Positions 877 to 44,634 of a stretch of 64,000 nt of DNA are shown piece after piece. The notes under the pieces are model-generated. The model was given only the letters and a program-made list of their open reading frames with translations, did not search any database and had not been told where the DNA came from. The stretch spans positions 68,262,001 through 68,326,000 of the forward strand of contig NC_043006.1 of the NCBI RefSeq assembly GCF_006345805.1, in the 5' to 3' direction. Both the position numbers and the translations under genes were made by a program. Each line of letters begins with the position of its first letter. The first letter of the stretch is position 1. The stretch is from Octopus sinensis (lineage: Eukaryota).

Positions 877-3546
877 TAGGCCTTGAAACCGGTTTTATAT
901 TATGATCAGTAAAACCAAAACAGATTCGCCAAAATCGATTTTAATGCTTGCTGTTTCTATTTATTTTTTTTCGCAAAACATTTCTCCATTTTTTTCTTTT
1001 CATGAAATATCATTGAAACTGAACTAACTGAACTGTTGTCGGTTGCCTTTAGTTGAGAGTGCTGGCTGTTTCATTGAAACATATCGCAACATATCAATTC
1101 TCACCTTCTCTCCCCTTGAACCTTAGATCAGCACCTTGTCATTTCCTTCGCTGACTCTTTGAATTTGGAGGTAACAGAGTTTATTCATAGAAAGTCAAGG
1201 GGATGCTGTTAATCTTCAGTCAGTTGATCTTTCTTGTTGAGCATATGTAATAACCAGTTCTAGATCCATTTCAAGGAAGTAATACTAACTAAATTTTTTC
1301 TTAATTACTTTCATTAGCCCTAGCATGATAAAAAGAAAATCAACTGTTTGGAATTTTTTTGATAGGAAAAACAAAGATGAAGCTCAATGCAATAAGTGTG
1401 ATAAGATCACGAAGTCTTCTGGAGGATCTACTACATCTCTGATCTTGCACTTGAAGAAAATTCATCAAATTGACATATATCAAGATGCAAACCAGCCTCC
1501 AGTGAAAATGACAAGAACAATGGAACACTTTTTAACAAAGAAATCAATGGAAGAAGAAATTTCAAAGTTAGCTGCTATGGATGGATTCTCTTTCAATTCA
1601 ATCGCGAAAAGCGATTTTGTACAGAGAAATATCTTCATAGTCAGAGAGGCAAATATGATAAATTATAACCAACATCTGCAAACGGAGTCAGGAATATGGT
1701 AATGAATTATTACATAACCAAGAAAGAAGAACTTATTCATTATTTCGAAAGAGAAGTAGTGCTAGGGATTCGTTACTCATTGACATTAAATGAATACACA
1801 TCAATTCAAAATAAACGATATATGAACATAAATGTTCATGGGAAAGACAATCATTGATCATTGGGTCTTATTGAGATCCATGGCTCCCTTAATAGCAGGA
1901 GAACAGAGCAATTTGTGAGAGGACATCTTCATGAATTTGGATTGGATTTGGATATACACATTGTTGGCTGTACGACGGATGATGCTTCTATGATGATGAA
2001 ATTCAGAAAAGAAATAAGACCTGATCACCAACAATGTCTCACACATTGCATACATCTGTCTGTGATTGACATTCTCTATCAAAAAAATATTGAAAATATT
2101 GCCTCAACTGATGAGACTGATAAAAAAAGTGAAGAGATTGCTATAACAGACGATAGTGATGATGAAGCTGACATAAGCCAACAAGACATACTTTTTCAAA
2201 CAGATTTGGCTCACGAAAATGCTTGTTTTCCCCAGCTAAAACCTGAATTTAACAAAGTTTTAAATAAGGTAAGAAAAATTTCAAAACTTTTCTGTAAATC
2301 TCCTACAAAAAATGAAATTTTGCAAGATTTTGTACGAGCGAACTTTGATAACAGAGAATATAAACTTATACTGGATTGCAGAACTAGTTGGAACAACACA
2401 TTCCATATGATTGAGAGATTTTTGAAATTGAAAAGCTGCATTCCAAATGCTCTACGAGCAGTACTTTCCACAGATGCCGTAACTGACAAAGAATGGAAAT
2501 CTCTTGATTTACTATATGAAATTCTGCATCCAGTAGAAATTATTTTGAAGGCTATTTGCGCTGATGATATGGATTTACTGAAAGCGGAATATTCTATAGA
2601 ATTTTTATTGAATAAACTTAATATCGTCGGCAACCCTTTGGCTCTAAATCTTCGTGAAAGAATTATGCATAGATATAATAAGAGAAGAAATGTCAAAACC
2701 TTGACTCTCTTGAGGTATTTACATAACCCAAGGAAGTTTAAAGGTGAATCAATTTCTGGACCTTTTCTTTTTTTAACGAAAAAACATTTAAGGAAGAATG
2801 CTGAACAAACATATAGGAGATTATTTCCTGAACATGATGCTGAGCACACAACAGAATTATACAAAGAAAATGAAATAGGAGGGAACCTAAAAACAAGTGT
2901 TACTGTTGTCCCATCTACTTACAGAGGTAATGAACTCATGCATGAATACACAAGCGCAATGAAGAAAATGAATGAAGAGCCCAAGATAGTAACAGATGGA
3001 TTTGAAATCTCTAAAGAATTTGAATATTTTGAAGCAACTTTGAACAGAAGTGAAAAGCTCGAGAAACTTTATATAGCATTGCTTACAACTAAAGCAACTA
3101 GTGTCCAGTCAGAAAGAGCTTTTTCAATTACTGGACTTTTCAACACAAAAATTAGGACTGGTTTGTCAGGTAAAACACTGAATGCATTGTGTTTTTTAAA
3201 AGATTATTTTGGAAGGAAAGTGAATCATCAAGCAAGTCAAGAAACTTGATTGATTCTCAAATGTACAATGACTTGGAAAAACGTTGCATTCCTGATTAAA
3301 TAAATATAATACCATTATTTTTTGTTATTGTTTGTACATAGATACAGATACAGGCACCATCAACATATTTGTGGATATCAGTCAACCTGTTACTTTTTCT
3401 CTTTCTGTGTATTTATATAAACAAATTGCAATATACGACAAACTTCTTCATTACAGGGACACCACTCTAAATCCATGAAAACCGGTTTTGAGAATTACTT
3501 ATACTTAAACTCAGTTTTGGGAATTATCGGTTTTTTGCAAGCCCTC
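877..3546 (+). mobile_element. hAT-superfamily DNA transposon (defective)
   Basis: Imperfect terminal inverted repeats (taggccttgaaaccgg at 877; reverse complement gagggcttgcaaaaaaccg ending 3546) with subterminal aaaccggtttt repeats enclose a hAT transposase. The 8-bp flanks match only 5/8. Confidence 0.7.
1325..3249 (+). pseudogene. hAT transposase pseudogene (BED zinc finger + DDE + hATC dimerisation domain)
   Basis: BED finger VWNFF..C..C..STTSLILHLKKIH, then SLTLNEYTS, TTDDASMM, LILDCRTSWNNTFHMIERFL and SVQSERAFS. One frameshift near 1630-1700, a TGA just before 1861, and the first catalytic Asp reads Asn. Confidence 0.9.
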
Positions 3547-18030: not shown

Positions 18031-19657
18031 GGTGCGCAACATTGCTGGAGTTCTGTAATTACAAAGGTATCAAATTGTTGGATCAGGTGATGAAAGTTAC
18101 AGAGAGGGTCATAGCTCAACTAATTAGAGAGAGAGTTAATCTAGATGAAATGCAGCTTGGCTTTGTGCCAGGGAGAAGCACCACTGATGCTATATTTCTG
18201 GTAAGGAGGCTGCAGAAGAAATACTTAACCAAAGATAAACCTCTGTATTTGGTTTTTGTCGACTTGAAGAAAGCCTTTGACAGGGTCCCCCGATCTGTTA
18301 TCTGGTGGTAAATGCAGAAACTAGGGATAGACGAGTGGTTGGTGCAAGTTGTATAAGCCATGTACAGGAAAACTACCAGTAAGGTGAGGTTTGGCAATAA
18401 GTAAAGCAAAGAATTCAGGGTACAAGTAGGGGTTCACCAACAAGTAGGGGTCCTCAGCTCCCTATTGTTCCTCATAGTCCTCGAGGTAATAACAGAGGAA
18501 TTTAAGACAGGTTGCCACTGGGAGCTTCTTTATGCTGATGAGCTTGTTCTTATTGCTGAATCACTACCAGAACTAGAGAAGAGGTTTCAGGTATGGAAGC
18601 AAGATCTAGAATCAAAGGGCCTTAGAGTTAACCTTGCAAAAACCAAAGTCTTAGTAAGTAGGAAGGCAGACAAATCACAAATCCCTTTAGGAAGATGGCC
18701 CTGCTTGATCTGTAGAAAAAGCATAGGTAGAAACTCCATAAGATGTATGGATACATAAGAGATGCAGTAATATAAGAGGAAGGTTAACAGGGAAAATAGC
18801 TTTTGTGGGTAAGCCAGAAGAAGTAGATAGCTTCCATTATCTATGTGACCAAGTTAGTAGTGGAGGTTGATGCTTTGAGAATGTAGCAGTCAGTGACAAT
18901 AAGAGCAAAGTTCAGAGAGCTCCTACCTCTGCTGGCAATAAAGGGCCTCTCCTTCAGAGTGAAAGGAAGATTGTATGATACCTGTGTGCAAATAGCTATG
19001 CTATATGGCAGTGAAACAGGAGCTGTGACAGCTGAGGATACGTGTAGGTTTGAAAGAAATGAAGCTAATATGCTTCGCTGGACTTACAATGTCAGCGTGC
19101 ATGTTCGACAGAGTGTAAGCATATTGAGAGAAAAGTTGGGCATAAGAGGCATCAGATGTGATGTACAAGAGAAACAACTGTACTGGTATGGTCATGTGAT
19201 GCGTATGACTGAGGACAGCCGTATAAAGAAGTGCTTATTTCTAACTGTGGAGGGCATCTGTAGTAGAGGTAGACCCAGGAAGACATGGGACAAGGTGGTG
19301 AAGCATGATCTTCAAACTTTGGGCCTGGCAGAGGCAATGACTGGTGACCAAGACTGTTGATGACATGTTGTGCTTGAGAAAACCTGTCAAGTCAAGTGAA
19401 ATCATAGTTGTGGCTGATGTTGGTATCACATAACTGGCACCTGTGCTGGTGGCATGTAAAAAACACCTTTCGAGTGTTGAGCTTCACAGAGGCAAAGTGG
19501 CTGGTGCTGGTATCACGTGAAAACTCCTTTTGAATGTTGGACCTTACAGAGACAATGACTGAGACCTTTGGCATTATGTCCTCTAGCTTGCCAGCCCTAG
19601 TCAAATCTTCCAACCCATGCCAGCATGGACAATGGATATTAAATGATGATGATGATA
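18030..19657 (+). mobile_element. RTE-clade LINE, 5'-truncated and degenerate, with (GAT)n tail
   Basis: NYKGIKLLDQVMKV, GFVPGRSTTDAIF, FVDLKKAFDRVP, LLYADELVL, LYGSET, WYGHVMRM and RGRPRKTW. The 3' UTR ends atgatgatgatgat. Confidence 0.9.
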
Positions 19658-19899
19658 CACAAACATACATAATATGGGTGATATTTTCAGCCAAGTCATT
19701 ATAATCATATCTTATTTTTCAAGTGTTCCAATTCTGTGTATGTACATAGATTTGCTAGATTGCTGACAATTATTAATAGCTTTCCCCATTGTGTTGATGT
19801 GCCATTTTTTATCATTAATAAAACTGTTGGCATTTTTGCTAACATGGGGATGCTAGTGTACGTGTGTGTGTATATATATATATATATATATGTACATAT

Positions 19900-22583
19900 A
19901 GAGGGAAAGCAAGAAAAATAAATGAAAATGCACATTGTGATGATTTGAACCAATCTCAGCAGGAAGTATTTTTCTGCAATATACACATGACCATGTCAAC
20001 ACTTCTGCTCGGAGTCGTTTACCGTCCCCCAAATTATCGCCAAGACGCACAGCTTTTTGATATCCTCAGAGCTGCTGCCATGAAAACAGCCACATATGTG
20101 TATATTGCGAGCGACTTCAATTTCCCTGAGATTGACTGGGAGGCCTTCCGTTGGCCGCAAAGTGCAGACGATTTCCTTGAACTGGTGCTGAATTCAAATT
20201 GGTCCCAAGTTGTTACCTCCCCCACAAGGGGTAACAGCACTTTGGATCTGCTACTTACCGCTTCTTCTGAAACAATCATTAGTGTCTCTACCGAAGAACC
20301 TTTAGGTGACTCTGATCATTCCATGATCATGGCCGACTTGTCTCTGATTGGTTGTTACAAAAAACACAACCATCTTCAGACTGCCCGCTTTGACTGGAAT
20401 AAAGCAAACTGGAGCTCTTATTGTACTGAGCTGCAATGCCCAAACTGGCACGAATTTTATGCCTCTGGAGATGTGGACACTATACTCCATAACATTCTGA
20501 ATTCAATATGGGCAGCATGTGCAGCATCAGTACCATGTGCAGCATCAGTACCATGCAAGCACAAAAAACCACCCAGGAAAGAACGCCGTAATGCTGAACA
20601 GGAATACAAATTGCACAAATCAGAGAGCAACAGGAAAAAGTGCAATAGGTCAGCCAACCACCTCAAGCAGGTGACAAAAAAGGCAGTGCTTGAATTTGAA
20701 TAACGCATTGCAGCTAACCCTGACAGCAAAGTGTTCTGGAAGTATGTGCACTCAAAGCAGAGACCCCACTCTCCAGTTGGTCCCCTTCGCAATCCCCACA
20801 CAGGACAGATTACTGGCAATCCCGAAGAATGTGCAGAAATCATTGCTGGATGCTATGCCGGCATCTTTACTGTGGAAGACCAAAATGTTCCATCTTCATC
20901 ACCACTGACATCGGACTCAATATCTACAATGCAATTTACACCAGCAATGCTGCAACGCCACCTTAAGAATAAACGCAATTATGCCTCTCCTGGTCTCGAT
21001 GGTGTTACATACCTACTTCTCAAACGTGGTGGGTACTTTCTTCTAAGCCAACTTTCTCTATTCTTCCAATTCTGTCTTGACAATGGTGTTACTCCAGAAC
21101 AGTGGAAAACTGCCAGTGTCATCCCTCTGTTCAAAAAAGGCGACCGCACATTGCCTGTCAACTATCGCCCCGTCAGTCTTACTAGCTGCATCGCAAAACT
21201 GATGGAATCCTGTATCAGAGAAACACTCTGGAACTTCTGGAAGTCTCACAGCCTCATCCAGCCGTCACAATTCGGATTTATTCCTAACTCCAGCTGCTGT
21301 AATCAACTCATCGAGTTTCTTGAGGACGTTACCTAAATCACTGATCGCGGATCCTGGGTGGATGTTGTTTACCTGGACTTTGCTAAGGCTTTTAACTCTG
21401 TGCCACACAAAAGACTTATGGTGAAGCTTTCTGCGTTGGGTGTAAGAGATGAACTCTATAACTGGTTGAAGTCCTTTATTTTTGGCCGAAAAGAGGTTGT
21501 CACAGTTCTAGGACAGCACTCTTTGCCCTATGAGATGACATCTGGTGTACCACAGGGATCTGTTCTTGGCCCCCTTTTATTTGTTGCATATGTTAATGAC
21601 ATAGATGCCAACTTAAAGAATGCCACAGTGCTGAAATATGCAGATGACATCAAGCTGTACCTCGAAATAAAGAGGTCAAATCCTGTACACTATAGATCTC
21701 TATTGCAAGCAGACCTAGACACAATGCAGCAGTGGATCATGGACTGGCAACTCAAGCTGGCTGTGGACAAATGTACCACCATGCATTTTGGGAGGAGAAA
21801 CCCAGCGTTCACCTACTCCCTCCACAACACTAGTCTCAAAAAGTCTTCATGTGAACGTGACCTGGGTGTTATTGTCGACAGTGATTTGCGTTGGACAAAA
21901 CACATCACTAAAATTGTCAAGAAGGCTGAGGGTGTCTTGGCATCACTCACCAAATCCTTTGTGAGCCACTCTCCGGCTATCTATCTGCGGCTTTATATAG
22001 CTATGGTAAGACCTCACCAGGAATTTGCATCACCGGTCTGGAACCCCTATCTTGCCCAAGATATCAATCGTCTGGAAGCTGTTCAGCGACGTGCAACCAA
22101 AAGAATACCCTCCATCAGGCATTTGCCATATCCTGAACGCCTTACTTCCCTGGGCATGGACACATTGAAACTCCGACGTCTGGCAGCTGACTTGGCAGAC
22201 ACTCATAAAATTATCAACCATCGTACAAACAATAACTCTGAGCACCTTTTCAAACTCCACCCATCTAACACCCGTGGACATATTTACGAAGTCAGAAAAC
22301 AGCACAGCTCCCATGACTTCAGGAAACATTTTTTCATGCTGAGAGTTGCTGAAGCATAGAACAAACTGCCGGCATCAGTTGTTAGTTGTCGGAGCACTGC
22401 ATCCTTCAAAACTTCCATGCTTTCTGAGATTCGCCAACACTACACTTGATTTTCTCCCCTCCATACACACACAAGCATGAATCTGACTCATACATTACAT
22501 TACTGCATGTACTTTATATGCACTATCTGACAAGTTGTGGTGCACCTGAGCACTGTATACAATAATTTCATTATTATTATTAT
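19900..22583 (+). mobile_element. CR1-like LINE, 5'-truncated, ORF2 (APE + RT) nearly intact
   Basis: ORFs 19864-20703, 20731-21336 and 21358-22359 share one frame, broken only by stop codons. APE motifs GVVYRPP, SDFNFP and GDSDH; RT motifs NYRPVSLTS, YLDFAKAF, GVPQGSVLGPLLF and YADD. Tail is (ATT)n. Confidence 0.92.
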
Positions 22584-23022
22584 AAATCAAGAGAAGAAAA
22601 GGCTTTTTATGAAAAGTAACGATAGACATATACAATTAGAGGAATTGAGGAAGTAATAAAAGTCATTATTGTGAATTGTTAAAGAGATTCAAGCATACTG
22701 GTTTTGTATGTTACAAATCATTGCTTTGAATACAACTATTCATTGCTTTGAATGAATAGCAATGAATAGTGTAGAACATTTTGGTTGTTTTGCTAAATTT
22801 TTCTTGAGAACATTTCTTAGTGGTAAGACCATAGCGGATCTATTTCTAGCATAAGGGTGTCCACATAGTGGTCTCCCTCCAATATGTATATAATACAATT
22901 TTACTGAACATTCAATTTTTTTATATGCTAGACCACTGGTGTGAAATCGATGTTAATTAAATTAATATCTAATTTCTCACCGTCATTTTAAATTCATATA
23001 TATATATATATATATATATATA

Positions 23023-23446
23023 AATGAATGTTTTTATATATAATGAACGTGAAATACAGGAAGGGACGAACACGGAACACAGACAAATCATTCGAAGCCT
23101 TCAACCTTCAGTCAGAAACCGAATCATCATAGCAAATTTCGGCTGTTCAATTCTGATATTTGCTCCAACTCGGCCAGCCCCAAGAAAAAAACTAAGCTGT
23201 AAGCATTAGATTTCTTGGTAGAAGACAGGAATGTGAACACACAAGACGGATGTAAATACAAGAGACGAAAACGAAAAAATTGAAAACAAGAGACGAAAAC
23301 GAAAAAATTGAAAACAGTAATGAATAAACAAAATATATATAACGGTGGTTGTCATACGACTTTAGACCAAATGAGACAAAACAACAACAACATAGCAGCT
23401 GGCGTAGAAATAATTACCGTTTCGGTAGCGGGGACACGTGTTGGTC
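23023..23446 (+). repeat. Host repeat segment A (left copy), ending in the target duplication
   Basis: Near-identical to 30524-30916. Carries an internal 28-bp duplication at 23258-23313 and is preceded by (TA)n. Confidence 0.9.
23428..23446 (+). repeat. 19-bp target-site duplication gcggggacac(a/g)tgttggtc, copy 1 of 5
   Basis: Other copies at 24973-24991, 26711-26729, 28448-28466 and 30182-30200; uninterrupted target at 30898-30916. Confidence 0.95.
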
Positions 23447-24972
23447 TATTTCTTTATTACCCACTAGGGGCCACGAAGAGGGAACATTACAAAACATGGG
23501 GGACATAAAACAATGCGATTAAAATTATGATTAAATGAATGTTAAAATGAAAAAATGATAACATGAAAGCGATGCTAACGGCCCCCTCCGCCAGCATCAC
23601 TTACCTTTCCGTTTCCTATCACGATTCCAAGTTTTTCACCTCACCTTTCATTTCTCTCTCATATCTCTCTATCATATCATCCTTCATAAATGCTGATAAA
23701 CAATTTATACGTAGTTCATTGCACTTGCTCATCGAAGAGCCCATGAGTTCAAAATCGAATACCGCATAGCTTCCGTCCTCATACTCCTGCCATACATCGT
23801 CTTCAAAAAGCCTTCTTGCGTTCTCAGTATCCCCCTTCCCCACAACACATAAAAAGTAGGACTGGGGCTTTTGTATGTTCTGTGTGTCTGTTTTCGTTTT
23901 TCTTGTAGGCGGGGAGTGGGTGGGATTGCTGTTTGCAGGGGCAGGATGGGTCTCCAAGGGTGTGGGTGGTATTGGGGTGGGTTGGGGCTTCGCACAGTTT
24001 TTCCTTTTCTTTCCTTTTCTCTTCTTTCTGCCCTCCTCACACTCTTTTTGCATCTCCTCCTACTCTGTCATTTCCCTTTCCGTCTGCTTCTCTTTAATTT
24101 CTTCTTCTTTTGGGGCCTCCTCTTTTGGAGTTTCTTCAACGATTTCCTTTTCTCTTGGTGGGGGAGGGCAGAAGGCTACTTTCTCCTCGTGGCCGCTGAT
24201 CACAGCCGCCACAATCCACTCAGCCTCAACGTTTGGTGGCACTCCCTCCACCCTTACTCGTGTAATCCTTCTATTCAAGTACATTGGTAAAAGTGTTACC
24301 TTTTCTGACTTCACTGTCTTCACCGCCATCTTCCTCGCTGCAGTCTCGCTTTTAAAATGTACCACTACAGTACCGTACTTCGATCCTCGAGTCAGAAAAA
24401 TGATTTCCTCCTCCGATCTTCTCAGGGCCTCCTCTATCCATTCCATGTTTATAATTTCTATTTTCTTTCTTTCGTTCGCGAACACCCTGTAAATTATGGT
24501 CCTTTTATTGTACCATTCCTTTCTCTTTGGTGGTGGTTCCAGTTCCACCTCGCCGCTGTCCTTCCTCATATACCTCTGGAAACCTGGCAATTTTTCTAGG
24601 TTTATTTCTTTTTCCTGTTCCGTCTTCTTTTTTGCAACTCCTGCGTACGTTTTCCTGTTTTTTGTCTCCACATTATTTACATCACCGATTTGCTCGTCTT
24701 CAGAGTTCGATGTCTCCGACAAGCTCTCAAATATCCATTCCTCCTCCGACTCCCCCACTAGGGAGTGGTCATCCATTTCCTCCTGTCTGACGGGCCGAAA
24801 ACGGCCGCCAAAACAGAAAAAGTGTAACGCGCAGAACCAGCGGAACGCGAAACCGCTTCAACGCCGTTCAAAATTTCCACAACAACAACAATTCTTTTTG
24901 ATCTTTTTTACCGAATTTTACGAGCGTAAAAAAACACGACCGAACTCAAACTGACGAACAGACAACTGATCC
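23447..24972 (-). mobile_element. ORF1-only element, array unit 1 (defective)
   Basis: Homologous to units 2-4. Has a 189-bp in-frame deletion removing the CCHC knuckle, a TAG at ~24060 and a 1-bp deletion near the ORF end. Confidence 0.9.
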
Positions 24973-24991
24973 GCGGGGACACATGTTGGTC

Positions 24992-26710
24992 TATTTCTTT
25001 ATTACCCACTAGGGGCCACGAAGAGGGAACATTACAAAACATGGGGGACACAAAACAATGCGATTAAAATTACGATTAAATGAATGTTAAAATGAAAAAA
25101 TGATAACATGAAAGCGATGCTAACGGCCCCCTCCGCCAGCATCACTTACCTTTCCGTTTCCTATCACGATTCCAAAGTTTTTCACCTCACCTTTCATTTC
25201 TCTCTCATATCTCTCTATCATATCATCCTTCATAAATGCTGATAAACAATTTATACGTAGTTCATTGCACTTGCTCATCAAAGAGGCCATGAGTTCAAAA
25301 TCGAATACCGCATAGCTTCCATCCTCATACTCCTGCCATACATCGTCTTCAAAAAGCCTTCTTGCGTTCTCAGTATCCCCCTTCCCCACAACACATAAAA
25401 AGTAGGACTGGGTCTTTTGTATGTTCTGTGTGTCTGTTTTCGTTTTTCTTGTAGGCGGGGAGTGGGTGGGATTGATGTTTGCGGGGACAGGATGGGTCTC
25501 CAAGGGTGTGGGTGGTATTGGGGTGGGTTGGGGCTTCGCACAGTTTTTCCTTTTCTTTCCTTTTCTCTTCTTTCTGCCCTCCTCACACTCTTCTTGCATC
25601 TCCTCCTCCTCTGTCATTTCCCTTTCCGTCTGCTTCTCTTTAATTTCTTCTTCTTTTGGGGCCTCCTCTTTTGGAGTTTCCTCAACGATTTCCTTTTCTC
25701 TTGGTGGGGGAGGGCAGAAGGCTCTTATGTGGCCCCTCAGGCCACACTTGTAACAACGTGGAGCTCTGCCCTCCACCCACACTCTCATAATCACGTCTCC
25801 TAATTTAATGCTCTCCGCCAGGTCCACCTGTACCTCGCTCTCCGCCTGCACGTTTAGCTCCACTATTACGCCTCTCCAGCCCTGGGTCTTGACCGAGGCA
25901 TGGAGAATATCTACTTTCTCCTCGTGGCCGCTGATCACAGCCGCCACAATCCACTCAGCCTCCACGTTTGGTGGCACTCCCTCCACCCTTACTCGTGTGA
26001 TCCTTCTATTCAAGTACATAGGTAAAAGTGTTACCTTTTCTGACTTCACCGCCTTCACCGCCATCTTCCTCGCTGCAGTCTCACTTTTAAAATGTACCAC
26101 TACAGTACCGTACTTCGATCCTCGAGTCAGAAAAATGATTTCCTCCTCCGATCTTCTCAGGGCCTCCTCTATCCATTCTATGTTTACGATCTCTATTTTC
26201 TTTCTTTCGTTCACGAACACCCTGTAAATTATGGTCCTCTTATTGTACCATTCCTTTCTCTTTGGTGGTGGTTCCAGTTCCACCTCGCCGCTGTCCTTCC
26301 TCATATACCTCTGGAAACCTGGCAATTTTTCTAGGTTTATTTCTTTTTCCTGTTCCGTCTTCTTTTTTGCAACTCCTGCGTACGTTTTCCTGTTTTTTGT
26401 CTCCACATTATTTACATCACCGATTTGCTCGTCTTCAGAGTTCGATGTCTCCGACAAGCTCTCAAATATCCATTCTTCCTCCGACTCCTCCACTAGGGAG
26501 TGGTCATCCATCTCCTCCCGCCTGACAGGCCAAAACGGCCGTCAAAACAGAAAAAGTGTAACGCGCAGAACCAGTGGAACGCGAAACCGCTTTAACGCCG
26601 TTCAAAATTTCCACAACAACAACAACAATTCTTTTTGATCTTTTTTTACCGAATTTTACGAGCGTAAAAAAACACGACCGAACTCAAACTGACGAACAGA
26701 CAACTGATCC
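24992..26710 (-). mobile_element. ORF1-only element, array unit 2 (intact), 1719 bp
   Basis: 199-bp 5' UTR, single 463-codon ORF and 128-bp 3' UTR ending AATAAAGAAATA; flanked by the 19-bp TSD. Confidence 0.93.
25120..26511 (-). CDS. Tx1/L1-type ORF1 (gag-like nucleic-acid-binding protein), 463 aa
   Basis: RRM-like segments (GTVVVHF, TRVRVEGVPPNV) and a CX2CX4HX4C knuckle (CYKCGLRGHIRAFC). An acidic/basic/Pro-rich linker is followed by a globular-looking C-terminal ~85 aa. Confidence 0.85.
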   Translation of the reverse strand: MDDHSLVEESEEEWIFESLSETSNSEDEQIGDVNNVETKNRKTYAGVAKKKTEQEKEINLEKLPGFQRYMRKDSGEVELEPPPKRKEWYNKRTIIYRVFVNERKKIEIVNIEWIEEALRRSEEEIIFLTRGSKYGTVVVHFKSETAARKMAVKAVKSEKVTLLPMYLNRRITRVRVEGVPPNVEAEWIVAAVISGHEEKVDILHASVKTQGWRGVIVELNVQAESEVQVDLAESIKLGDVIMRVWVEGRAPRCYKCGLRGHIRAFCPPPPREKEIVEETPKEEAPKEEEIKEKQTEREMTEEEEMQEECEEGRKKRKGKKRKNCAKPQPTPIPPTPLETHPVPANINPTHSPPTRKTKTDTQNIQKTQSYFLCVVGKGDTENARRLFEDDVWQEYEDGSYAVFDFELMASLMSKCNELRINCLSAFMKDDMIERYEREMKGEVKNFGIVIGNGKVSDAGGGGR

Positions 26711-26729
26711 GCGGGGACACATGTTGGTC

Positions 26730-28447
26730 CATTTTTTTATTACCCACTAGGGGCCACGAAGAGGGAACATTACAAAACATGGGGGACACAAAACAATGCG
26801 ATTAAAATTATGATTAAATGAATGTTAAAATGAAAAAATGATAACATGAAAGCGATGCTAACGGCCCCCTCCGCCAGCATCACTTACCTTTCCGTTTCCT
26901 ATCACGATTCCAAAGTTTTTCACCTCACCTTTCATTTCTCTCTCATATCTCTCTATCATATCATCCCTCATAAATGCTGATAAACAATTTATACGTAGTT
27001 CATTGCACTTGCTCATCAAAGAGGCCATGAGTTCAAAATCGAATACCGCATAGCTTCCATCCTCATACTCCTGCCATACATCGTCTTCAAAAAGCCTTCT
27101 TGCGTTCTCAGTATCCCCCTTCCCCACAACACATAAAAAGTAGGACTGGGTCTTTTGTATGTTCTGTGTGTCTGTTTTCGTTTTTCTTGTAGGCGGCGAG
27201 TGGGTGGGATTGCTGTTTGCGGGGGCAGGATGGGTCTCCAAGGGTGTGGGTGGTATTGGGGTGGGTTGGGGCTTCGCACAGTTTTTACTTTTCTTTCCTT
27301 TTCTCTTCTTTCTGCCCTCCTCACACTCTTCTTGCATCTCCTCCTCCTCTGTCATTTCCCTTTCCGTCTGCTTCTCTTTAATTTCTTCTTCTTTTGGGGC
27401 CTCCTCTTTTGGAGTTTCCTCAACGATTTCCTTTTCTCTTGGCGGGGGAGGGCAGAAGGCTCTTATGTGGCCCCTCAGGCCACACTTGTAACAACGTGGA
27501 GCTCTGCCCTCCACCCACACTCTCATAATCACGTCTCCCAATTTAATGCTCTCCGCCAGGTCCACCAGTACCTCGCTCTCCGCCTGCACGTTTAGCTCCA
27601 CTATTACGCCTCTCCAGCCCTCGGTCTTGACCGAGGCATGGAGAATATCTACTTTCTCCTCGTGGCCGCTGATCACAGCCGCCACAATCCACTCAGCCTC
27701 CACGTTTGGTGGCACTCCCTCCACCCTTACTCGTGTGATCCTTCTATTCAAGTACATAGGTAAAAGTGTTACCCTTTCTGACTTCACCGCCTTCACCGCC
27801 ATCCTCCTCGCTGCAGTCTCACTCTTAAAATGCACCACTACAGTACCGTACTTCGATCCTCGAGTCAGGAAAATGATTTCCTCCTCCGATCTTCTCAGGG
27901 CCTCCTCTATCCATTCCATGTTTACGATCTCTATTTTCTTTCTTTCGTTCACGAACACCCTGTAAATTATGGTCCTCTTATTGTACCATTCCTTTCTCTT
28001 TGGTGGTGGTTCCAGTTCCACCTCGCCGCTGTCCTTCCTCATATACCTCTGGAAACCTGGCAATTTTTCTAGGTTTATTTCTTTTTCCTGTTCCGTCTTC
28101 TTTTTTGCAACTCCTGCGTACGTTTTCCTGTTTTTTGTCTCCACATTATTAACATCACCGATTTGCTCGTCTTCAGAGTTCGATGTCTCCGACAAGCTCT
28201 CAAATATCCATTCTTCCTCCGACTCCTCCACTAGGGAGTGGTCATCCATCTCCTCCCGCCTGACAGGCCAAAACGGCCGTCAAAACAGAAAAAGTGTAAC
28301 GCGCAGAACCAGTGGAACGCGAAACCGCTTTAACGCCGTTCAAAATTTCCACAACAACAACAACAATTCTTTTTGATCTTTTTTACCGAATTTTACGAGC
28401 GTAAAAAAACACGACCGAACTCAAACTGACGAACAGACAACTGATCC
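26730..28447 (-). mobile_element. ORF1-only element, array unit 3 (intact), 1718 bp
   Basis: Same organisation as unit 2; flanked by the 19-bp TSD. Confidence 0.93.
26858..28249 (-). CDS. Tx1/L1-type ORF1, 463 aa
   Basis: Near-identical to 25120-26511, with an uninterrupted frame and the CCHC knuckle. Confidence 0.85.
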   Translation of the reverse strand: MDDHSLVEESEEEWIFESLSETSNSEDEQIGDVNNVETKNRKTYAGVAKKKTEQEKEINLEKLPGFQRYMRKDSGEVELEPPPKRKEWYNKRTIIYRVFVNERKKIEIVNMEWIEEALRRSEEEIIFLTRGSKYGTVVVHFKSETAARRMAVKAVKSERVTLLPMYLNRRITRVRVEGVPPNVEAEWIVAAVISGHEEKVDILHASVKTEGWRGVIVELNVQAESEVLVDLAESIKLGDVIMRVWVEGRAPRCYKCGLRGHIRAFCPPPPREKEIVEETPKEEAPKEEEIKEKQTEREMTEEEEMQEECEEGRKKRKGKKSKNCAKPQPTPIPPTPLETHPAPANSNPTHSPPTRKTKTDTQNIQKTQSYFLCVVGKGDTENARRLFEDDVWQEYEDGSYAVFDFELMASLMSKCNELRINCLSAFMRDDMIERYEREMKGEVKNFGIVIGNGKVSDAGGGGR

Positions 28448-28466
28448 GCGGGGACACATGTTGGTC

Positions 28467-30181
28467 TATTTCTTTATTACCCACTAGGGGCCACGAAGAG
28501 GGAACATTACAAAACATGGGGGACATAAAACAATGCGATTAAAATTATGATTAAATGAATGTTAAAATGAAAAAATGATAACATGAAAGCGATGCTAACG
28601 GCCCCCTCCGCCAGCATCACTTACCTTTCCGTTTCCTATCACGATTCCAAAGTTTTTCACCTCACCTTTCATTTCTCTCTCATATCTCTCTATCATATCA
28701 TCCTTCATAAATGCTGATAAACAATTTATACGTAGTTCATTGCACTTGCTCATCGAAGAGCCCATGAGTTCAAAATCGAATACCGCATAGCTTCCGTCCT
28801 CATACTCCTGCCATACATCGTCTTCAAAAAGCCTTCTTGCGTTCTCAGTATCCCCCTTCCCCACAACACATAAAAAGTAGGACTGGGGCTTTTGTATGTT
28901 CTGTGTGTCTGTTTTCGTTTTTCTTGTAGGCGGGGAGTGGGTGGGATTGCTGTTTGCGGGGGCAGGATGGGTCTCCAAGGGTGTGGGTGGTATTGGGGTG
29001 GGTTGGGGCTTCGCACAGTTTTTCCTTTTCTTTCCTTTTCTCTTCTTTCTGCCCTCCTCACACTCTTTTTGCATCTCCTCCTACTCTGTCATTTCCCTTT
29101 CCGTCTGCTTCTCTTTAATTTCTTCTTCTTTTGGGGCCTCCTCTTTTGGAGTTTCTTCAACGATTTCCTTTTCTCTTGGCGGGGGAGGGCAGAAGGCTCT
29201 TATGTGGCCCCTCAGGCCACACTTGTAACAACGTGGAGCTCTGCCCTCCACCCACACTCTCATAATCACGTCTCCCAATTTAATGCTCTCCGCCAGGTCC
29301 ACCAGTACCTCGCTCTCCGCCTGCACGTTTAGCTCCACTATTACGCCTCTCCAGCCCTCGGTCTTGACCGAGGCATGGAGAATATCCACTTTCTCCTCGT
29401 GGCCGCTGATCACAGCCGCCACAATCCACTCAGCCTCAACGTTTGGTGGCACTCCCTCCACCCTTACTCGTGTAATCCTTCTATTCAAGTACATTGGTAA
29501 AAGTGTTACCTTTTCTGACTTCACTGTCTTCACCGCCATCTTCCTCGCTGCAGTCTCGCTTTTAAAATGTACCACTACAGTACCGTACTTCGATCCTCGA
29601 GTCAGAAAAATGATTTCCTCCTCCGATCTTCTCAGGGCCTCCTCTATCCATTCCATGTTTACGATCTCTATTTTCTTTCTTTCGTTCGCGAACACCCTGT
29701 AAATTATGGTCCTCTTATTGTACCATTCCTTTCTCTTTGGTTGTGGTTCCAGTTCCACCTCGCCGCTGTCCTTCCTCATATACCTCTGGAAACCTGGCAA
29801 TTTTTCTAGGTTTATTTCTTTTTCCTGTTCCGTCTTCTTTTTTGCAACTCCTGCGTACGTTTTCCTGTTTTTTGTCTCCACATTATTTACATCACCGATT
29901 TGCTCGTCTTCAGAGTTCGATGTCTCCGACAAGCTCTCAAATATCCATTCTTCCTCCCACTCCTCCACTAGGGAGTGGTCATCCATCTCCTCCCGCCTGA
30001 CAGGCCAAAACGGCCGTCAAAACAGAAAAAGTGTAACGCGCAGAACCAGTGGAACGCGAAACCGCTTTAACGCCGTTCAAAATTTCCACAACAACAACAA
30101 TTCTTTTTGATCTTTTTTACCGAATTTTACGAGCGTAAAAAAACACGACCGAACTCAAACTGACGAACAGACAACTGATCC
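28467..30181 (-). mobile_element. ORF1-only element, array unit 4 (premature stop), 1715 bp
   Basis: The ORF is split by GAG>TAG into 29081-29986 (301 aa, keeps the knuckle) and 28595-29074. Confidence 0.92.
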
Positions 30182-30200
30182 GCGGGGACACATGTTGGTC

Positions 30201-30523
30201 AAGATACGATGGCCAACAGAATGGTTAAGAATCAGCAGGTTGCAGGAGAAAGAGAGACAGAGAGAGAGGGAATCAAAGAGGGTGGAAGGCAGGGGACAGA
30301 ATCAGTGACCAAGAGAAAAGGAGAAAGAAGGGATTAAGGAGGATGGGAGGAAGAGGGGAGGAGGATGGGAGGAAGAGGGGGGAAGAATCGTAGGGCGCCA
30401 AAATAGTTTGGTGAAGAAGCAATGGCGGGTAGGAAAGACAGTGTGTATAGAAGTCGTGCAGGGTTTAAAATTGGACAAACAAACGGGGGGGGGGGGGTGC
30501 ACGTAACGCCGCAATAATATAAG
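30201..30523 (+). repeat. Host repeat segment B (purine-rich), continuation of the interrupted target
   Basis: Begins aagatacgatgg, exactly the sequence that follows the empty target at 30917-30928. Confidence 0.8.
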
Positions 30524-30928
30524 AATGAATGTTTTTATATATAATGAACGTGAAATACAGGAAGGGACGAACACGGAACACAGACAAATCATTCGAAGCC
30601 TTCAATCTTCAGTCAGACACCGAATCATCATAGCAAATTTCGGCTGTTCAATTCTGATATTTGCTCCAACTCGGCCAACCCCAAGAAAAAAACTAAGCTG
30701 TAAGCATTAGATTTCTTGGTAGAAGACAGGAATGTGAACGCACAAGACGGATGTAAATACAAGAGACGAAAACGAAATTGAAAACAGTAATGAATAAACA
30801 AAATATATATAACGGTGGTTGTCATACGACTTTAGACCAAATGAGACAAAACAACAACAACATAGCAGCTGGCGTAGAAATAATTACCGTTTTGGTAGCG
30901 GGGACACATGTTGGTCAAGATACGATGG
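30524..30928 (+). repeat. Host repeat segment A (right copy) with empty target site
   Basis: Direct repeat of 23023-23446 that reads through gcggggacacatgttggtc-aagatacgatgg with no insertion. Confidence 0.9.
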
Positions 30929-30934
30929 ATATAT

Positions 30935-31200
30935 ATCTTCTTCTTAATCCTTTTTGCCCCTTGTGGACCATAGGGCCTCAACAGTTGCTTTCCACTTTTT
31001 GTGGTCATTGGCGTGTTTCTTGGCTGCTTCCCATGTCAGGCCAGTGGTACTGAGCTCGTCCAAAATACTTCATACTTCCATGTCTGCTTCGGGCGTCTTT
31101 GCTTCCTTTTCCCCTGCAGGTTCCAGTCGAGTGCTTGTCGTGTCACATTTGAAGGTTCTTTCCACAGTGTGTGTTCGATCCATCTCTATTTCCTTCGTCT
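30935..31200 (-). mobile_element. RTE-clade LINE 3' end fragment with (GAA)n-type tail
   Basis: Minus-strand translation RWIEHTLWKEPSNVTRQALDWNLQGKRKQRRPKQTW...WKATVEAL. Confidence 0.8.
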
Positions 31201-40829: not shown

Positions 40830-42904
40830 TTATTTCCTTAAAGTTTGCTCAATAGCTGGTTGAGCAGAGAAAGACGAATCTGATGAACCGGTCTGAAGAC
40901 TGTAGGCCTGTAACCAGGCCAGTGGAGAATAGTCATGAACCTCTTTGATTTTAGGGGTGGGTTGAAATGCTTCTTTTAAAATAGCACGACTGGGGTCATC
41001 CTTGCGCTGTAATAGCAATACCAGTGCGTTATAATGTTCACTACCCCCAACCGTGTGTCGTCGCTTGCCTCGTACTTTCCTCCTCGCTAAAGGGGGTGGG
41101 GAATTGGATCGAGGTTTCGCAGCTGTGTTCACTTTGGCCATTACTGTAGACCGTGGTGTCCACAACTGTTGACCACTAGCGGAATCTCTAAAGTTTTTTC
41201 GTGTATTTTCAGATCTGTAGCCACCATTGAAACAGTTATTTTTGTTACAAGATGACTTTAAGTTTTTTTTTGAATGGCAATCTTTTGGAGGTGAAGAACT
41301 TGCTGAAGGGGACAAAGAATATATTTTACCTAAATTAGAAAGTTTAGAGTCTATATACTCAGTACAAAGTCCACCACCATTGCTACGTCGTTGGACCAGT
41401 TCCGAAGATGATGCTAAATGACTGGCAGCTATTGGTGCAGCACCATGCGTTATTATTGCCCGCTCACCCAAAACATGTGCAGTCGGACTGGAGTTACTGC
41501 GTGTGAAACGAGAAGCAATACCTATTTTTGTCTCTGGTTTCTGAGAACGATGTAAACTGGGGTCACGGAAACTATCAAAGACATCTGTATTCTTTTTTGC
41601 CTGTCTACTATATGCCAAACCAAGGTTCAACATACGTGTACTCTCGGCCTGGGCCAACTCAAGACTCTCACTGGTACAGTCATAAACATTGCTGTTCGAA
41701 GGGACAATTTCATTGTTTTTCATAGCTGAATACGGTGACACACCTATGTTAGATGGAGGCCGTGGTCTGGAACTACCATTTAATTTATATTTAGGATTTA
41801 ATAGGATCTGCAGTTTCTGATCAAACGTTGAGGTTAAGCTTGTTAATAGGTCAGAACCATCTTCAGAATCAGTTGAAGCCCAGGACAAACGATTCTCTTT
41901 CTTATCATAAAAGTCTATCATTGAATCTAGAGAACCTCTCCGTAAGCTATTTCTCCGTGTAAGGCCCAAGTCAGAATCATTTTGTGGACTTAGCTCTCTG
42001 TCTTGTGTCTTACGAGCAACTATTGACAATGGAGATGGCCAAACTTGACCCGTGTCAATAATTGTCTCAAGAGAATTTGACCTCTTTGCATTATCAAATC
42101 CTGTATTGAGGTATGATGTTCTGTCAGAGATCTTGCTGTTTCCAACACTAACAAAATACTTTCCACCACTAACTGGTTCAATTGCTTTAGAAGTTGACCA
42201 GCTCTTGCCCTGTAATTGATAAGAGTCTAATGAATCATAAGGCTTGGCATACACAGCATTGTAAGGGTAGTTAGTAGAGTACCATATCTTTCTTGGATTT
42301 AATAATTCTTCAAGACTATGTTTATCTTCCAACTCCATCTCATGCTTAGTACGCAGATATTCCTGGTCAAATTTCTTTGACTCTTTTTCTCTCACTTCAC
42401 ATTCTCTTTTATGTTGTTCCTGAACTTTCTTGAGAAATTCCTGTTTACTCTGAAGATTTGATTCGAGGCTGTGGCTGAAAGTTTTCTGGAGACCATATGA
42501 GAATTCCAGTTCATCACTTTTCTCCAATAGGGATTCGTCTGAGAACTGACGAGCAAGATGAGGGTTTGAAGACTTGGAGAACACTTCAGAATCAGTGTAA
42601 TCATCGAAGCCTATAGACAAGGAAGACACAGATGCCTTATGTTCACTGGTGAGACGACTACTGTAAGAAATAGTATCCAGTTGGCTTTGAGAACCATCAG
42701 ACTGTAGTTCCATTGAGTTAGCCAGAGCTTTGTTAGAATGAAATTTAGCAATCTCTGCATCAATATTGCGTTCTTCATATTTGGGACCAGGTGGTGTTGA
42801 ATCTGTTTCATCAAGACCTTTGGTTTTCTTGATACGATTCTTATTCTTGGCAGCAGCAATCATATCAGCAACTATTTCCAACGGATTTGTTTCTTCAGAT
42901 TCAT
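40830..42904 (-). CDS. ARHGAP21: ARHGAP21/23-like terminal exon (long low-complexity C-terminus, stop at 40830)
   Basis: Acceptor tttcag at phase 1 (G|AT GAA), about 690 open codons, motifs RRGSLDS and RRHTVGG. Confidence 0.85.
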
Positions 42905-44634
42905 CTGAAATGACAAAAATATATTTTGTAAACATATAAAACGAACATAATTACATAGGCACAAGGTTATACATCTGAAGGGAGGGGCTGCAATCAATTA
43001 TATCTGCTACAGGGAGTGGAAAGATAAAGAAAATAGTGTTACTTTGGCATGTGATCCACAACTTAAAGGGAGATTACTTTAGGTTACTTTTTAGTTTATT
43101 TTTCAATTTCTAAAAACACTTAAGATGTTGGCTCAAGATTTTTTACAATAAATTCTTTTGTACATTCTTAGCATTGTAAATGTATTTTTTCAGAATTCTT
43201 ACTATTTTAATAATCAAACCATATTTCATTTATGTCTTAGTAAATAATTAATAAAAAAACAAAACAAGAAAAACAATATAATAATTAAGATAAGCTTGTA
43301 GCTCACAGTTTGGTAGCTGTGAATTTTACAACGTAAAGAAACAGAAAAATTAACCTAAAGTAATCACCCTTGAAGTTGTAGATTGCACACCAAAGTAGCA
43401 CCAAGAAAATCTTGGCAGAATTCAGACCCAGAATGTAAGGGTATAATTTAATGCTCTACAAGTCAACAATTTACTGTTTCTGCAAGAAATAATCTTCACC
43501 CCATCCTCTCTTACACTTTAACAAAAACAACGATAATAATATAGGCAAAAGGCCTCAAATTTAGAGGGGAAAGAATAAGATTTTAAACAATCAACCCCAG
43601 TACTTCACTTATACTTAATTTTATCACTTTCAGAAGGATGGAAGGAAAAGTTAACTTTGACAGGATTTGAACTCAGAATCTAATAAGGAGCTGGAAGAAG
43701 TATAGCAGAGTGTTTTTCTGATACTCTAACAATTCTGCTGGCAATACTAATAAAAATCCTTTCCATTATAGGCACCAGGTACAGACATTTTTTTTGATAG
43801 TAGGGCTAGTCAATTACATCAACCCTGGTGCAGAACTGGCACTTATTTCAATGACCTCAAAAAGATAAAAGGCAAAGTTGACCTCAGAGGAATTTGAACT
43901 CAGCTGCTAACAATTCTGCCAGCTCACCATCTTGATATGTAATATTAGAATAACAAAGTCTGAGAAAGGGCAAGAATAATTGATTTCATTTGGCCCTAAG
44001 ACATAATAGGTATTTATTGAATGAAGCCCCCTTCCACCGCCCAGAAGGAGTGTGTGGGTAAAAGGCAAAATTTGTTGAAACAAGGTTATTTTAAAAATAA
44101 TTCAGTTTTATCTATTAATATTTAAATGTGAAATTATGAATGCTAATGTTAGATATGTGATGTATCAGTAAAATTGCTAATTTGCTGGTAATGAAAGAAA
44201 GCTGACTGAATATCCAGAAAAAGAGGGTGACCAAACCTGTGAAAAGGGAAATCCAAAATAAGGGAAATATCTATCGCTTGTGTATGTATGTGTTAGTAAA
44301 CCTGTGTATGAGTGTGTGTGATCACTTACCAAGATCATCATCAGGAGTGGATGCTTGTGCCATAGGACTGACCGTTCCTGTAGGAACCTCAGCAGCTCCA
44401 TTCTCATCCACAGGAACATGATTGTCGACATCCCATGAACTGAAGAACCAATCGGGCTGAAAACATCAAATAAAAAAAAAAACTGTACATGTATGTATAT
44501 GTGTGTGTATATATATATAGAACAATATTTAAATTTCTCTCATGAAGGATTAGTGTTCTAAATATCAAAACTCTTTCTCTTTCTTTTAAACATTAAGCTT
44601 ATACAAACATGGTGTTTTCTTTTTTGTTCATTGC

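Follow-up and report, generated by a model that had tools for sequence, protein, structure and literature searches.

A block of repeated sequence in Octopus sinensis raises the question of what a retroelement with a single open reading frame (ORF) is, how such an element moves, and how four copies of it came to lie head to tail at one site. The block lies in a 64,000-nucleotide stretch of contig NC_043006.1 (NCBI RefSeq assembly GCF_006345805.1, positions 68,262,001 to 68,326,000 of the forward strand), hereafter the window, in which all positions without another accession or locus are given. An initial annotation of the window described four minus-strand units and proposed a young, sequence-specific retroelement that carries ORF1 only and stacks by repeated insertion. 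Each unit very probably represents, in complete form, an ORF1-only and non-autonomous element derived from an octopod long interspersed nuclear element (LINE) of L1/Tx1 type, and sequence specificity is not supported.

The ORF1-only unit and its LINE relatives

The array consists of four head-to-tail minus-strand units (U1 to U4, Table 1) with one 19-mer at each unit boundary, at every start that the initial annotation had listed. All four units have exactly equal 5′ and 3′ ends, and their pairwise identity is 97.3-98.9%, with 17-41 substitutions between units and separate indels besides a 189-bp deletion in U1. The earlier length of ~1.72 kb per unit holds for U2, U3 and U4 (1719, 1718 and 1715 bp) and fails for U1, which is ~190 bp shorter (1526 bp). 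The 463-codon ORFs of U2 and U3 are intact, as first reported, and these two ORFs along with a divergence of 1-3% agree with the proposed youth of the element. Exact-protein look-ups of both intact ORFs returned no record. The ORFs of U1 and U4 are broken: a GAG>TAG stop at codon 302 is common to both, and in U1 the 189-bp deletion, which is in frame, takes out the zinc knuckle and is accompanied by a 1-bp deletion. Pfam finds no match to a reverse transcriptase (RT) or an endonuclease in the 1.72-kb unit, where the 463-codon ORF is the sole ORF and leaves no space for an ORF2, as had been noted. With no RT of its own, the unit is non-autonomous. The 3′ untranslated region (UTR) of U2 is 128 bp long and terminates in AATAAAGAAATA without a poly(A), again as described, with the next 19-mer directly adjoining.

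An exhaustive HMMER search finds 324 relatives of the ORF, the closest of which are unnamed or “CCHC-type” proteins, all from Octopus or Argonauta (O. sinensis, O. vulgaris, O. bimaculoides and Argonauta hians). A word-indexed homology search with the single ORF gave no match; with a 47-sequence profile it gave just 3 distant matches, because low-complexity words crowded the candidate list, and with a trimmed core profile 2. Pfam matches to the ORF are only sub-threshold (zf-CCHC, E = 0.061), and the family profile matches the knuckles of ZCCHC8 and of retroviral nucleocapsids in the PDB with E values of 7e-7 to 1e-5. The AlphaFold2 model built with an alignment has a predicted local distance difference test score (pLDDT) above 90 over approximately amino acids (aa) 60-270, and the model from the single sequence is uninformative (pLDDT 44.6). 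The best Foldseek matches of the core are proteins with tandem RNA recognition motifs (RRMs), namely IMP3 RRM12 (8e-6), raver1, HuC and hnRNP A1 UP1. The protein is predicted to begin with an acidic N-terminus and to continue with two RRM-like domains, a single CCHC knuckle and a C-terminal domain, which agrees with the initial reading of an RRM-like region followed by CX2CX4HX4C and doubles the RRM-like part. An ORF1 in which one or more RRMs precede a CCHC knuckle has Type I architecture (PMC5203782, after Khazina and Weichenrieder, 2009), and the modelled ORF is built in this way. Type I is consistent with Tx1-clade elements, according to the account in PMC5203782.

The initial annotation had suggested looking for relatives in which a similar ORF1 stands upstream of an ORF2 with apurinic/apyrimidinic endonuclease (APE) and RT and which end in the same 3′ tail, and such elements exist. 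In Argonauta hians (locus L008), the homologous ORF1 (P0019) leads a 5.4-kb element with a 16-bp target-site duplication (TSD), whose ORF2 matches Exo_endo_phos, RVT_1 and zf-RVT. The alignment of this ORF2 with human L1 ORF2p (4e-42), its closest solved relative, spans the entire protein, while its match to R2 proteins is confined to the RT part (1e-19). At a second O. sinensis locus (L007), fragments of an ORF2 that match Exo_endo_phos and zf-RVT lie downstream of the homologous ORF1, with no RT match within the pieces scanned; in O. vulgaris (L009) long ORFs occupy the ORF2 position behind the homologous ORF1, and more distant relatives (L001/L002) have Exo_endo_phos and RVT_1 downstream of the ORF1 homologue. 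Judged by these domain matches, the ORF1 homologues head octopod L1/Tx1-like two-ORF LINEs. A repeat annotation of O. vulgaris counts 13 recently active L1-Tx1 families with 421 insertions, 2.29 Mb in all and a mean of ~5.4 kb (PMC13282606; 2026 repeat annotation), a mean that fits the 5.3-5.4-kb LINEs of L008 and L009.

A distant ORF1 homologue with 30% identity, LOC115225585, is solitary at another O. sinensis locus (L003, 10001-10846; CM016886.1), where no downstream ORF of at least 120 aa matches an ORF2. It sits within a cluster of C2H2 zinc-finger repeats and may be another ORF1-only element or a fragment.

The junction between the two ORFs points to how the unit would have been made. 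In the L009 LINE, the end of ORF1 and the start of ORF2 read …TAAGGTAAGTGATGAAC…, and the unit has the 13-mer AAGGTAAGTGATG 34 nucleotides (nt) ahead of its stop codon, with the variant AGGTAAGCGATG in a sister element at L006. Past the ORF2 ATG, the unit goes straight into a T-rich 3′ UTR, and its last ~40 nt match the L009 LINE tail with 87.5% identity over 40 nt (E = 1e-7). The motif GCCC(C)TTGTGG..AATAAAGAAAT also terminates the LINEs of L008 and L007 and the L006 element. It appears that a parental two-ORF LINE lost its ORF2 (APE, RT and zf-RVT; ~3.4 kb) directly after the ORF1/ORF2 junction, and that the unit would have kept the 5′ UTR, the whole of ORF1, the junction including the ORF2 ATG, and ~120 nt at the end of the 3′ UTR. 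The short form is found in the array and, as a sister family, at L006; a further copy, at L005, is truncated inside ORF1 and does not show the 5′ end.

Two other sources for the short form were considered and rejected. A spliced product of the SpIRE (spliced integrated retrotransposed element) kind, made through the GTAAGT at the ORF1/ORF2 boundary, would not have the donor that the unit retains. The RT encoded nearby on the + strand (18893-22359) is not the missing ORF2, being on the opposite strand, of Exo_endo_phos_2 type and outside the TSDs. That region is a broken LINE of another type, unrelated to the array, with Exo_endo_phos_2 and RVT_1 in four frame-shifted ORFs, and lies just upstream of the host element described below.

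The conserved motif AGGTAAGTGATG at the ORF1 stop and ORF2 start is also a perfect 5′ splice-site consensus. It occurs at 25140-25152 and at the same position in U1, U3 and U4, at ~10140 in L005 and at ~11330 in L009. One O. vulgaris gene model, CAI9716891 (P0021), is apparently spliced from the GT of the truncated L005 copy to exons spread over ~62 kb, and may be a chimeric transcript initiated in a transposable element (TE) or an annotation artefact.

We infer that the unit is probably mobilised in trans by an autonomous LINE, because its 3′ tail is common to autonomous LINEs, to the main octopus short interspersed nuclear element (SINE) and to the unit; the borrowing of RT and endonuclease suggested earlier is reasonable in this light. 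The tail motif terminates a ~235-bp octopus SINE (52022-52254) and is found at 20 sites in the 82-kb locus L005. The 4-bp hairpin directly before AATAAA is conserved with slight covariation, which is weak evidence, and a metagenome scan for the tail of the unit returned 0 matches. In the proposed cycle, the RNA of an intact copy would be translated into its own ORF1 protein, and the endonuclease and RT of a related autonomous LINE would reverse-transcribe that RNA at a staggered genomic nick. The donor enzyme would recognise the shared poly(A)-less tail (the small hairpin and AATAAAGAAAT), as used by the abundant SINE, and the insertions would carry 16-19-bp TSDs, could be 5′-truncated and would have targets that are not sequence-specific. 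LINE/SINE pairs with a common 3′ tail and stringent-type recognition are known, for example UnaL2/UnaSINE of the eel (concept: PMC5786205). The octopus case resembles them in that a ~40-nt tail with a short hairpin is present in autonomous LINEs, the ~235-bp SINE and the unit, and differs in that the passenger still codes for a protein (ORF1), unlike a SINE. The SINE copy at 52022-52254 is itself flanked by the TSD AAGAAGTCTTAA.

The closest parallel to the unit is HAL1 (“half-L1”) of mammals, described as a non-autonomous L1 derivative that encodes ORF1p alone (Smit, 1999; Bao and Jurka, 2010, as cited in PMC5753468). An intact ORF1, the absence of ORF2, the LINE's own 3′ terminus and a junction relic joined directly to the 3′ UTR make the unit HAL1-like. 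In both, ORF1 is kept and under selection while ORF2 is deleted, the termini and TSDs are the element's own, and related autonomous LINEs are presumed to supply the ORF2 protein that mobilises it. The short form also apparently arose more than once or diversified, since the window family and its L006 sister are 65% identical. In contrast, the octopus ORF1 is of predicted Type I (two RRMs and a CCHC knuckle) and that of HAL1 is Transposase_22 with a coiled coil. The octopus unit also has a poly(A)-less 3′ end with a specific, SINE-shared tail (“stringent” type), a cephalopod host and a TSD-separated tandem arrangement. The unit is an analogue of HAL1, not a member, and is not derived from mammalian L1.

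Target site, host repeat and specificity

The 19-mer GCGGGGACAC[G/A]TGTTGGTC occurs six times in the window (starts 23428, 24973, 26711, 28448, 30182 and 30898), against 0 expected from 100 shuffles. The sixth, absent from the initial annotation, sits 700 bp away inside an uninterrupted copy of the sequence that flanks the array (host copy B). When the flanks of the array are joined, they are 98.5% identical to host copy B, with 6 substitutions, one 31-bp indel and the 19-mer present once. Filled and empty site are thus both present in the window, which makes the 19-mer a true TSD, and the target duplication proposed at the outset is genuine. That the 19-mer could be part of the element, as a 5′ transduction or as its own 5′ end, is rejected, as the empty site carries it once and the L006 sister, which lacks it, begins at the corresponding position of the 5′ UTR.

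Two directly oriented copies of a discrete 412-bp element make up the host, and between them lies a 304-bp spacer (30213-30516) that is strongly purine-rich and closes with a run of 13 G; AT repeats bound the whole structure at 22996-23022 and 30929-30936. It looks like the LTR-internal-LTR arrangement of a miniature long terminal repeat (LTR) element, or like an unknown repeat with two adjoining copies. Neither Rfam nor a tRNA scan gave a match in the window, and the host element is accordingly no small-RNA gene of a recognisable kind.

Copies elsewhere bear on the question of specificity, where the family itself is sampled at two loci (the window and L005) and the TSD comparison covers four elements of the clade, a small sample. 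At L005 (O. vulgaris OX597815.1, 9588-10299), the last ~720 bp of a unit with 91% identity end in the same AATAAAGAAATA and are flanked on both sides by the 17-bp TSD GAAAGGTAGGAGAGTCC; the empty site lies 33 kb off, at 43175, in another copy of its host repeat. A TSD set against an empty site and a 5′-truncated copy with an intact 3′ end mark the unit as a non-LTR retroelement of the target-primed reverse transcription type, and the earlier assignment to ORF1-only non-LTR retroelements stands on the same observations. The sister at L006 (O. sinensis CM016880.1, 9458-11055; ~1.6 kb, 65% nt and 49% aa identity, with no space for an ORF2) has a decayed ORF, a 19-bp TSD, CAGAAAYGTTAGCACGCCG, and the same tail, and is seated in a SINE; NCBI annotates this remnant as the uncharacterized protein LOC118767527. 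For the autonomous L008 LINE of Argonauta, both flanks were examined, and its TSD, TCTTCAACTTATGTTT, is unrelated to the window 19-mer. Four elements (window, L005, L006 and L008) thus occupy four unrelated targets with unrelated TSDs and have no common motif at their nick sites, and sequence specificity is not supported.

Fixed targets occur within the Tx1 clade, as with Tx1L in Tx1D, Keno and Mutsu. A borrowed endonuclease of this kind could recognise the 19-bp site, with each insertion regenerating the target so that units stack, and the initial annotation had called the element sequence-specific on these lines. The five matching TSD copies with precise junctions agree with such an element, as does the existence of Tx1-clade families with fixed targets (PMC5753468). 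We nevertheless regard it as improbable, given that the L005 copy and the L006 sister lie in unrelated sequences with unrelated TSDs and that the autonomous L008 relative has yet another TSD (TCTTCAACTTATGTTT), with no shared nick-site motif. The identical target 700 bp off, in host copy B, is also empty, which is weak evidence, as chance vacancy has P ~0.4 by our own arithmetic. Sequence-specific Tx1-clade LINEs have been described (Kojima and Fujiwara, 2004, as cited in PMC5203782). The octopus unit resembles them in its Type I-like ORF1, an APE-RT ORF2 (in the octopus, in the presumed partners), long TSDs, the lack of poly(A) and insertion into another repeat; it differs in the defining trait, as the octopus copies are at unrelated sites.

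Table 1. Positions of the array units, target-site duplications, unit features and host sequence in the window
Feature	Position	Strand	Description
TSD copy 0	23428..23446	-	GCGGGGACACGTGTTGGTC on + strand; borders U1 3′ end; the only copy with G at position 11
U1	23447..24972	-	1526 bp; deletion junction ~24176/24177; stop 24060-24062; 1-bp deletion near C-terminus; 5′ part mosaic
TSD copy 1	24973..24991	-	between U1 and U2
U2	24992..26710	-	1719 bp, intact; 3′ UTR 24992-25119, ORF 25120-26511, 5′ UTR 26512-26710 (199 bp)
U2 ORF1, intact, 463 codons	25120..26511	-	from ORF list, homologues and predicted structure
Two tandem RRM-like domains (predicted), U2 ORF (~aa 93-166, 169-246)	25774..26235	-	AlphaFold2 and Foldseek
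CCHC zinc knuckle CYKCGLRGHIRAFC, CX2CX4HX4C, aa 253-266	25714..25755	-	read from sequence; profile matches
AAGGTAAGTGATG, putative ORF1-stop/ORF2-start relic including the ORF2 ATG	25140..25152	-	same 13-mer at L009 ORF1/ORF2 boundary
Shared 3′ tail (…CCCTCT…GGCCCCTAGTGGGTAATAAAGAAAT) with hairpin GCCC-CTTGT-GGGY	24999..25037	-	match to L009 LINE tail
TSD copy 2	26711..26729	-	between U2 and U3
U3	26730..28447	-	1718 bp, intact ORF 26858-28249; 3′ terminus AATAAAAAAATG
TSD copy 3	28448..28466	-	between U3 and U4
U4	28467..30181	-	1715 bp, full length; codon-302 stop at 29081-29083
TSD copy 4	30182..30200	-	borders U4 5′ end
Host copy A, left part	23016..23427		runs on into TSD copy 0; 28-bp tandem duplication at 23258-23316
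Host copy A, right part (AAGATACGATGG)	30201..30212		flank comparison
Host copy B, uninterrupted = empty site	30517..30928		19-mer once, at 30898-30916

Origin of the tandem array

For the array itself, we give an even chance to at least two insertions at the same site, followed by unequal exchange and/or conversion up to four units. The units are related as ((U1,U4),(U2,U3)), with the two pairs ~17 sites apart, and their physical order is A-B-B-A. Lineages A (U1, U4) and B (U2, U3) would have inserted at the same site of the 412-bp host repeat, each insertion re-creating the 19-bp target, and unequal exchange and/or conversion would then have expanded the array to four units. Among the variable sites of the ORF, 19 of 40 are synonymous against a neutral expectation of 11.6 corrected for transitions, transversions and CpG (P = 0.008), and pairwise dN/dS among units, the comparison recommended in the initial annotation, is 0.16-0.33. 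The synonymous excess fits purifying selection on the source lineage and does not fit neutral decay in place. One target copy is kept in every junction, as expected of a tandem made by double insertion.

Private changes are distributed very unequally, with 14 in U1 and 2 in U4. Nine private transitions of U1 fall within 119 nt (24735-24855, sense columns 118-236, in the 5′ UTR and ORF start) and 4 further private changes within ~50 nt (~24450-24500), and elsewhere U1 is nearly identical to U4. Because the nine transitions cluster in this way, U1 is a mosaic, and the clusters suggest that a third, diverged copy took part in conversion or recombination with U1. Within its last 6 nt, where reverse transcription starts, U3 carries 2 differences.

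As a tentative alternative, there may have been one retrotransposition only, after which the array grew at the DNA level alone, first by unequal exchange or replication slippage between the two 19-bp TSDs and then by conversion and homologous unequal exchange among the units. The same 19-mer at all junctions, the equal 5′ and 3′ ends of the units and the codon-302 stop common to U1 and U4 would follow directly, and identity is much higher among the units (97-99%) than between them and the sole other copy seen, at L005 (91%). The element is also not site-specific, so four independent hits on one nucleotide are unlikely a priori. However, a single insertion does not readily account for the synonymous excess, for sisters U1 and U4 that are not neighbours, for private branches as unequal as those of U1 and U4, or for the changes clustered at the 3′ terminus of U3. 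The first exchange between 19-bp repeats should moreover be rare, yet a second TSD-like LINE tandem is present among the ~7 loci examined. The initial proposal of stacking by re-insertion is possible and has some support, in the two lineages and the synonymous excess, but a single insertion followed by unequal exchange is still viable.

This second tandem, at L009 (4448-19184; O. vulgaris OX597840.1:31862384-31883409), is a head-to-tail array of at least 2.8 full-length two-ORF LINE units of 5.28 kb each with 99.1-99.6% identity. Its junctions contain ~9-10 nt resembling the left flank, its 3′ termini are far more variable than the unit bodies, and it runs into a 100-N assembly gap. The gap shows that related LINE arrays break the O. 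vulgaris assembly, and the window array could in principle be an assembly artefact whose true locus has one unit or some other number. We consider this the remotest of the alternatives, since the units differ by 17-41 substitutions, the 189-bp deletion and separate indels, and since the ends of the array join matching halves of the host element.

Purifying selection in place has also been considered, under which an ORF1-derived RNA-binding gene would form a tandem cluster that the host has domesticated or selected. While the dN/dS values of 0.16-0.33 and the two long intact ORFs would suit such a cluster, two of the four copies are broken, the TE termini, TSD and 3′ tail are retained, related copies are dispersed, truncated and decayed, and no conserved orthologue outside octopods was seen among the relatives found; a domesticated cluster is accordingly very unlikely.

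Tandems of this form have precedents in other non-LTR elements. In the R1 array of Drosophila melanogaster, 33 nt of target stand between units (McGurk and Barbash, 2018; PMC5932611), and TE dimers from double insertion are common and able to expand by unequal exchange (PMC5932611). Both R1 and the octopus array are made of head-to-tail full-length non-LTR elements with the same short target copy in every junction, in a small array that could be expanded by unequal exchange. R1 is autonomous, strictly specific to 28S ribosomal DNA and has 33-nt junctions, whereas the octopus unit is non-autonomous, not site-specific, has 19-nt junctions and is hosted by a 412-bp repeat. HeT-A of the Drosophila telomere is likewise Gag/ORF1-only, needs RT in trans and forms head-to-tail arrays. 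It belongs to the Jockey clade, lies at chromosome ends and has variable 5′ truncations and no TSD between units, whereas the octopus array has an internal site between the two halves of one host element, with 5′-complete units and a TSD at each junction. The internal site and the TSDs are the grounds on which a HeT-A-like telomeric array is rejected.

A more general mechanism, which we think unlikely, is that this octopod LINE clade, autonomous and ORF1-only elements alike, has a built-in tendency to re-insert beside an existing copy. One option for its cause is that read-through transcripts carrying the downstream flank (the TSD) could pair with the nicked identical target. If the tendency were real, dispersed retroelements would regularly seed TSD-separated tandem arrays, and the ORF1-only array would be under selection as a multi-copy supply of RNA and ORF1 protein to the family. 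It would also amount to a homing-like mechanism without a sequence-specific endonuclease, and to a direct route from a LINE to a tandem gene array or satellite.

Taking identity, movement and array origin together, an ORF1-only LINE derivative that is mobilised in trans and inserted at least twice at this site is our best explanation overall, at slightly better than even, and several points weigh against it. The autonomous relatives examined are only 22-34% identical to the unit in ORF1, none among them has a closely matching ORF1 or 5′ UTR, and the RT donor presumed in trans-mobilisation is correspondingly unmatched among these relatives. The five TSD copies and the four 5′ junctions are base-identical save one G/A, and for these junctions, as for the stop shared by U1 and U4, in-place DNA duplication is a simpler explanation than repeated insertion. 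The synonymous excess comes from 40 sites, and UTR variability (11/327) is not significantly above that of non-synonymous sites. Finally, arrays of this kind are fragile in assembly, as with the 100-N gap at L009.

Significance and neighbouring features

Half-LINEs and tandems separated by target duplications are both known already, and the octopus array is a cephalopod example of both. Half-LINE parasites, which keep ORF1 and lose ORF2, are thereby not confined to mammalian L1 and would also be present in a poly(A)-less, tail-specific L1/Tx1-type cephalopod lineage, where a single 3′ tail is used by an autonomous LINE, by an ORF1-only element and by an apparently abundant SINE. In the annotation of octopus genomes, the unit accounts for a set of “uncharacterized CCHC-type” gene models, and a TE exon bearing a splice donor appears to have become part of at least one predicted model. 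The window array and the L009 array offer natural material on how a retroelement tandem starts, by repeated insertion or by unequal exchange. This start bears on the origin of satellites and of tandem gene families, with precedents for both phenomena.

Two further ORFs lie away from the array. A 701-aa ORF with an ATG start on the minus strand (40830-42935) has no Pfam match, and no called gene by exact-protein look-up. On the plus strand, a 462-aa ORF at 1861-3249 contains a hAT C-terminal dimerisation domain and is the remnant of a DNA transposon.

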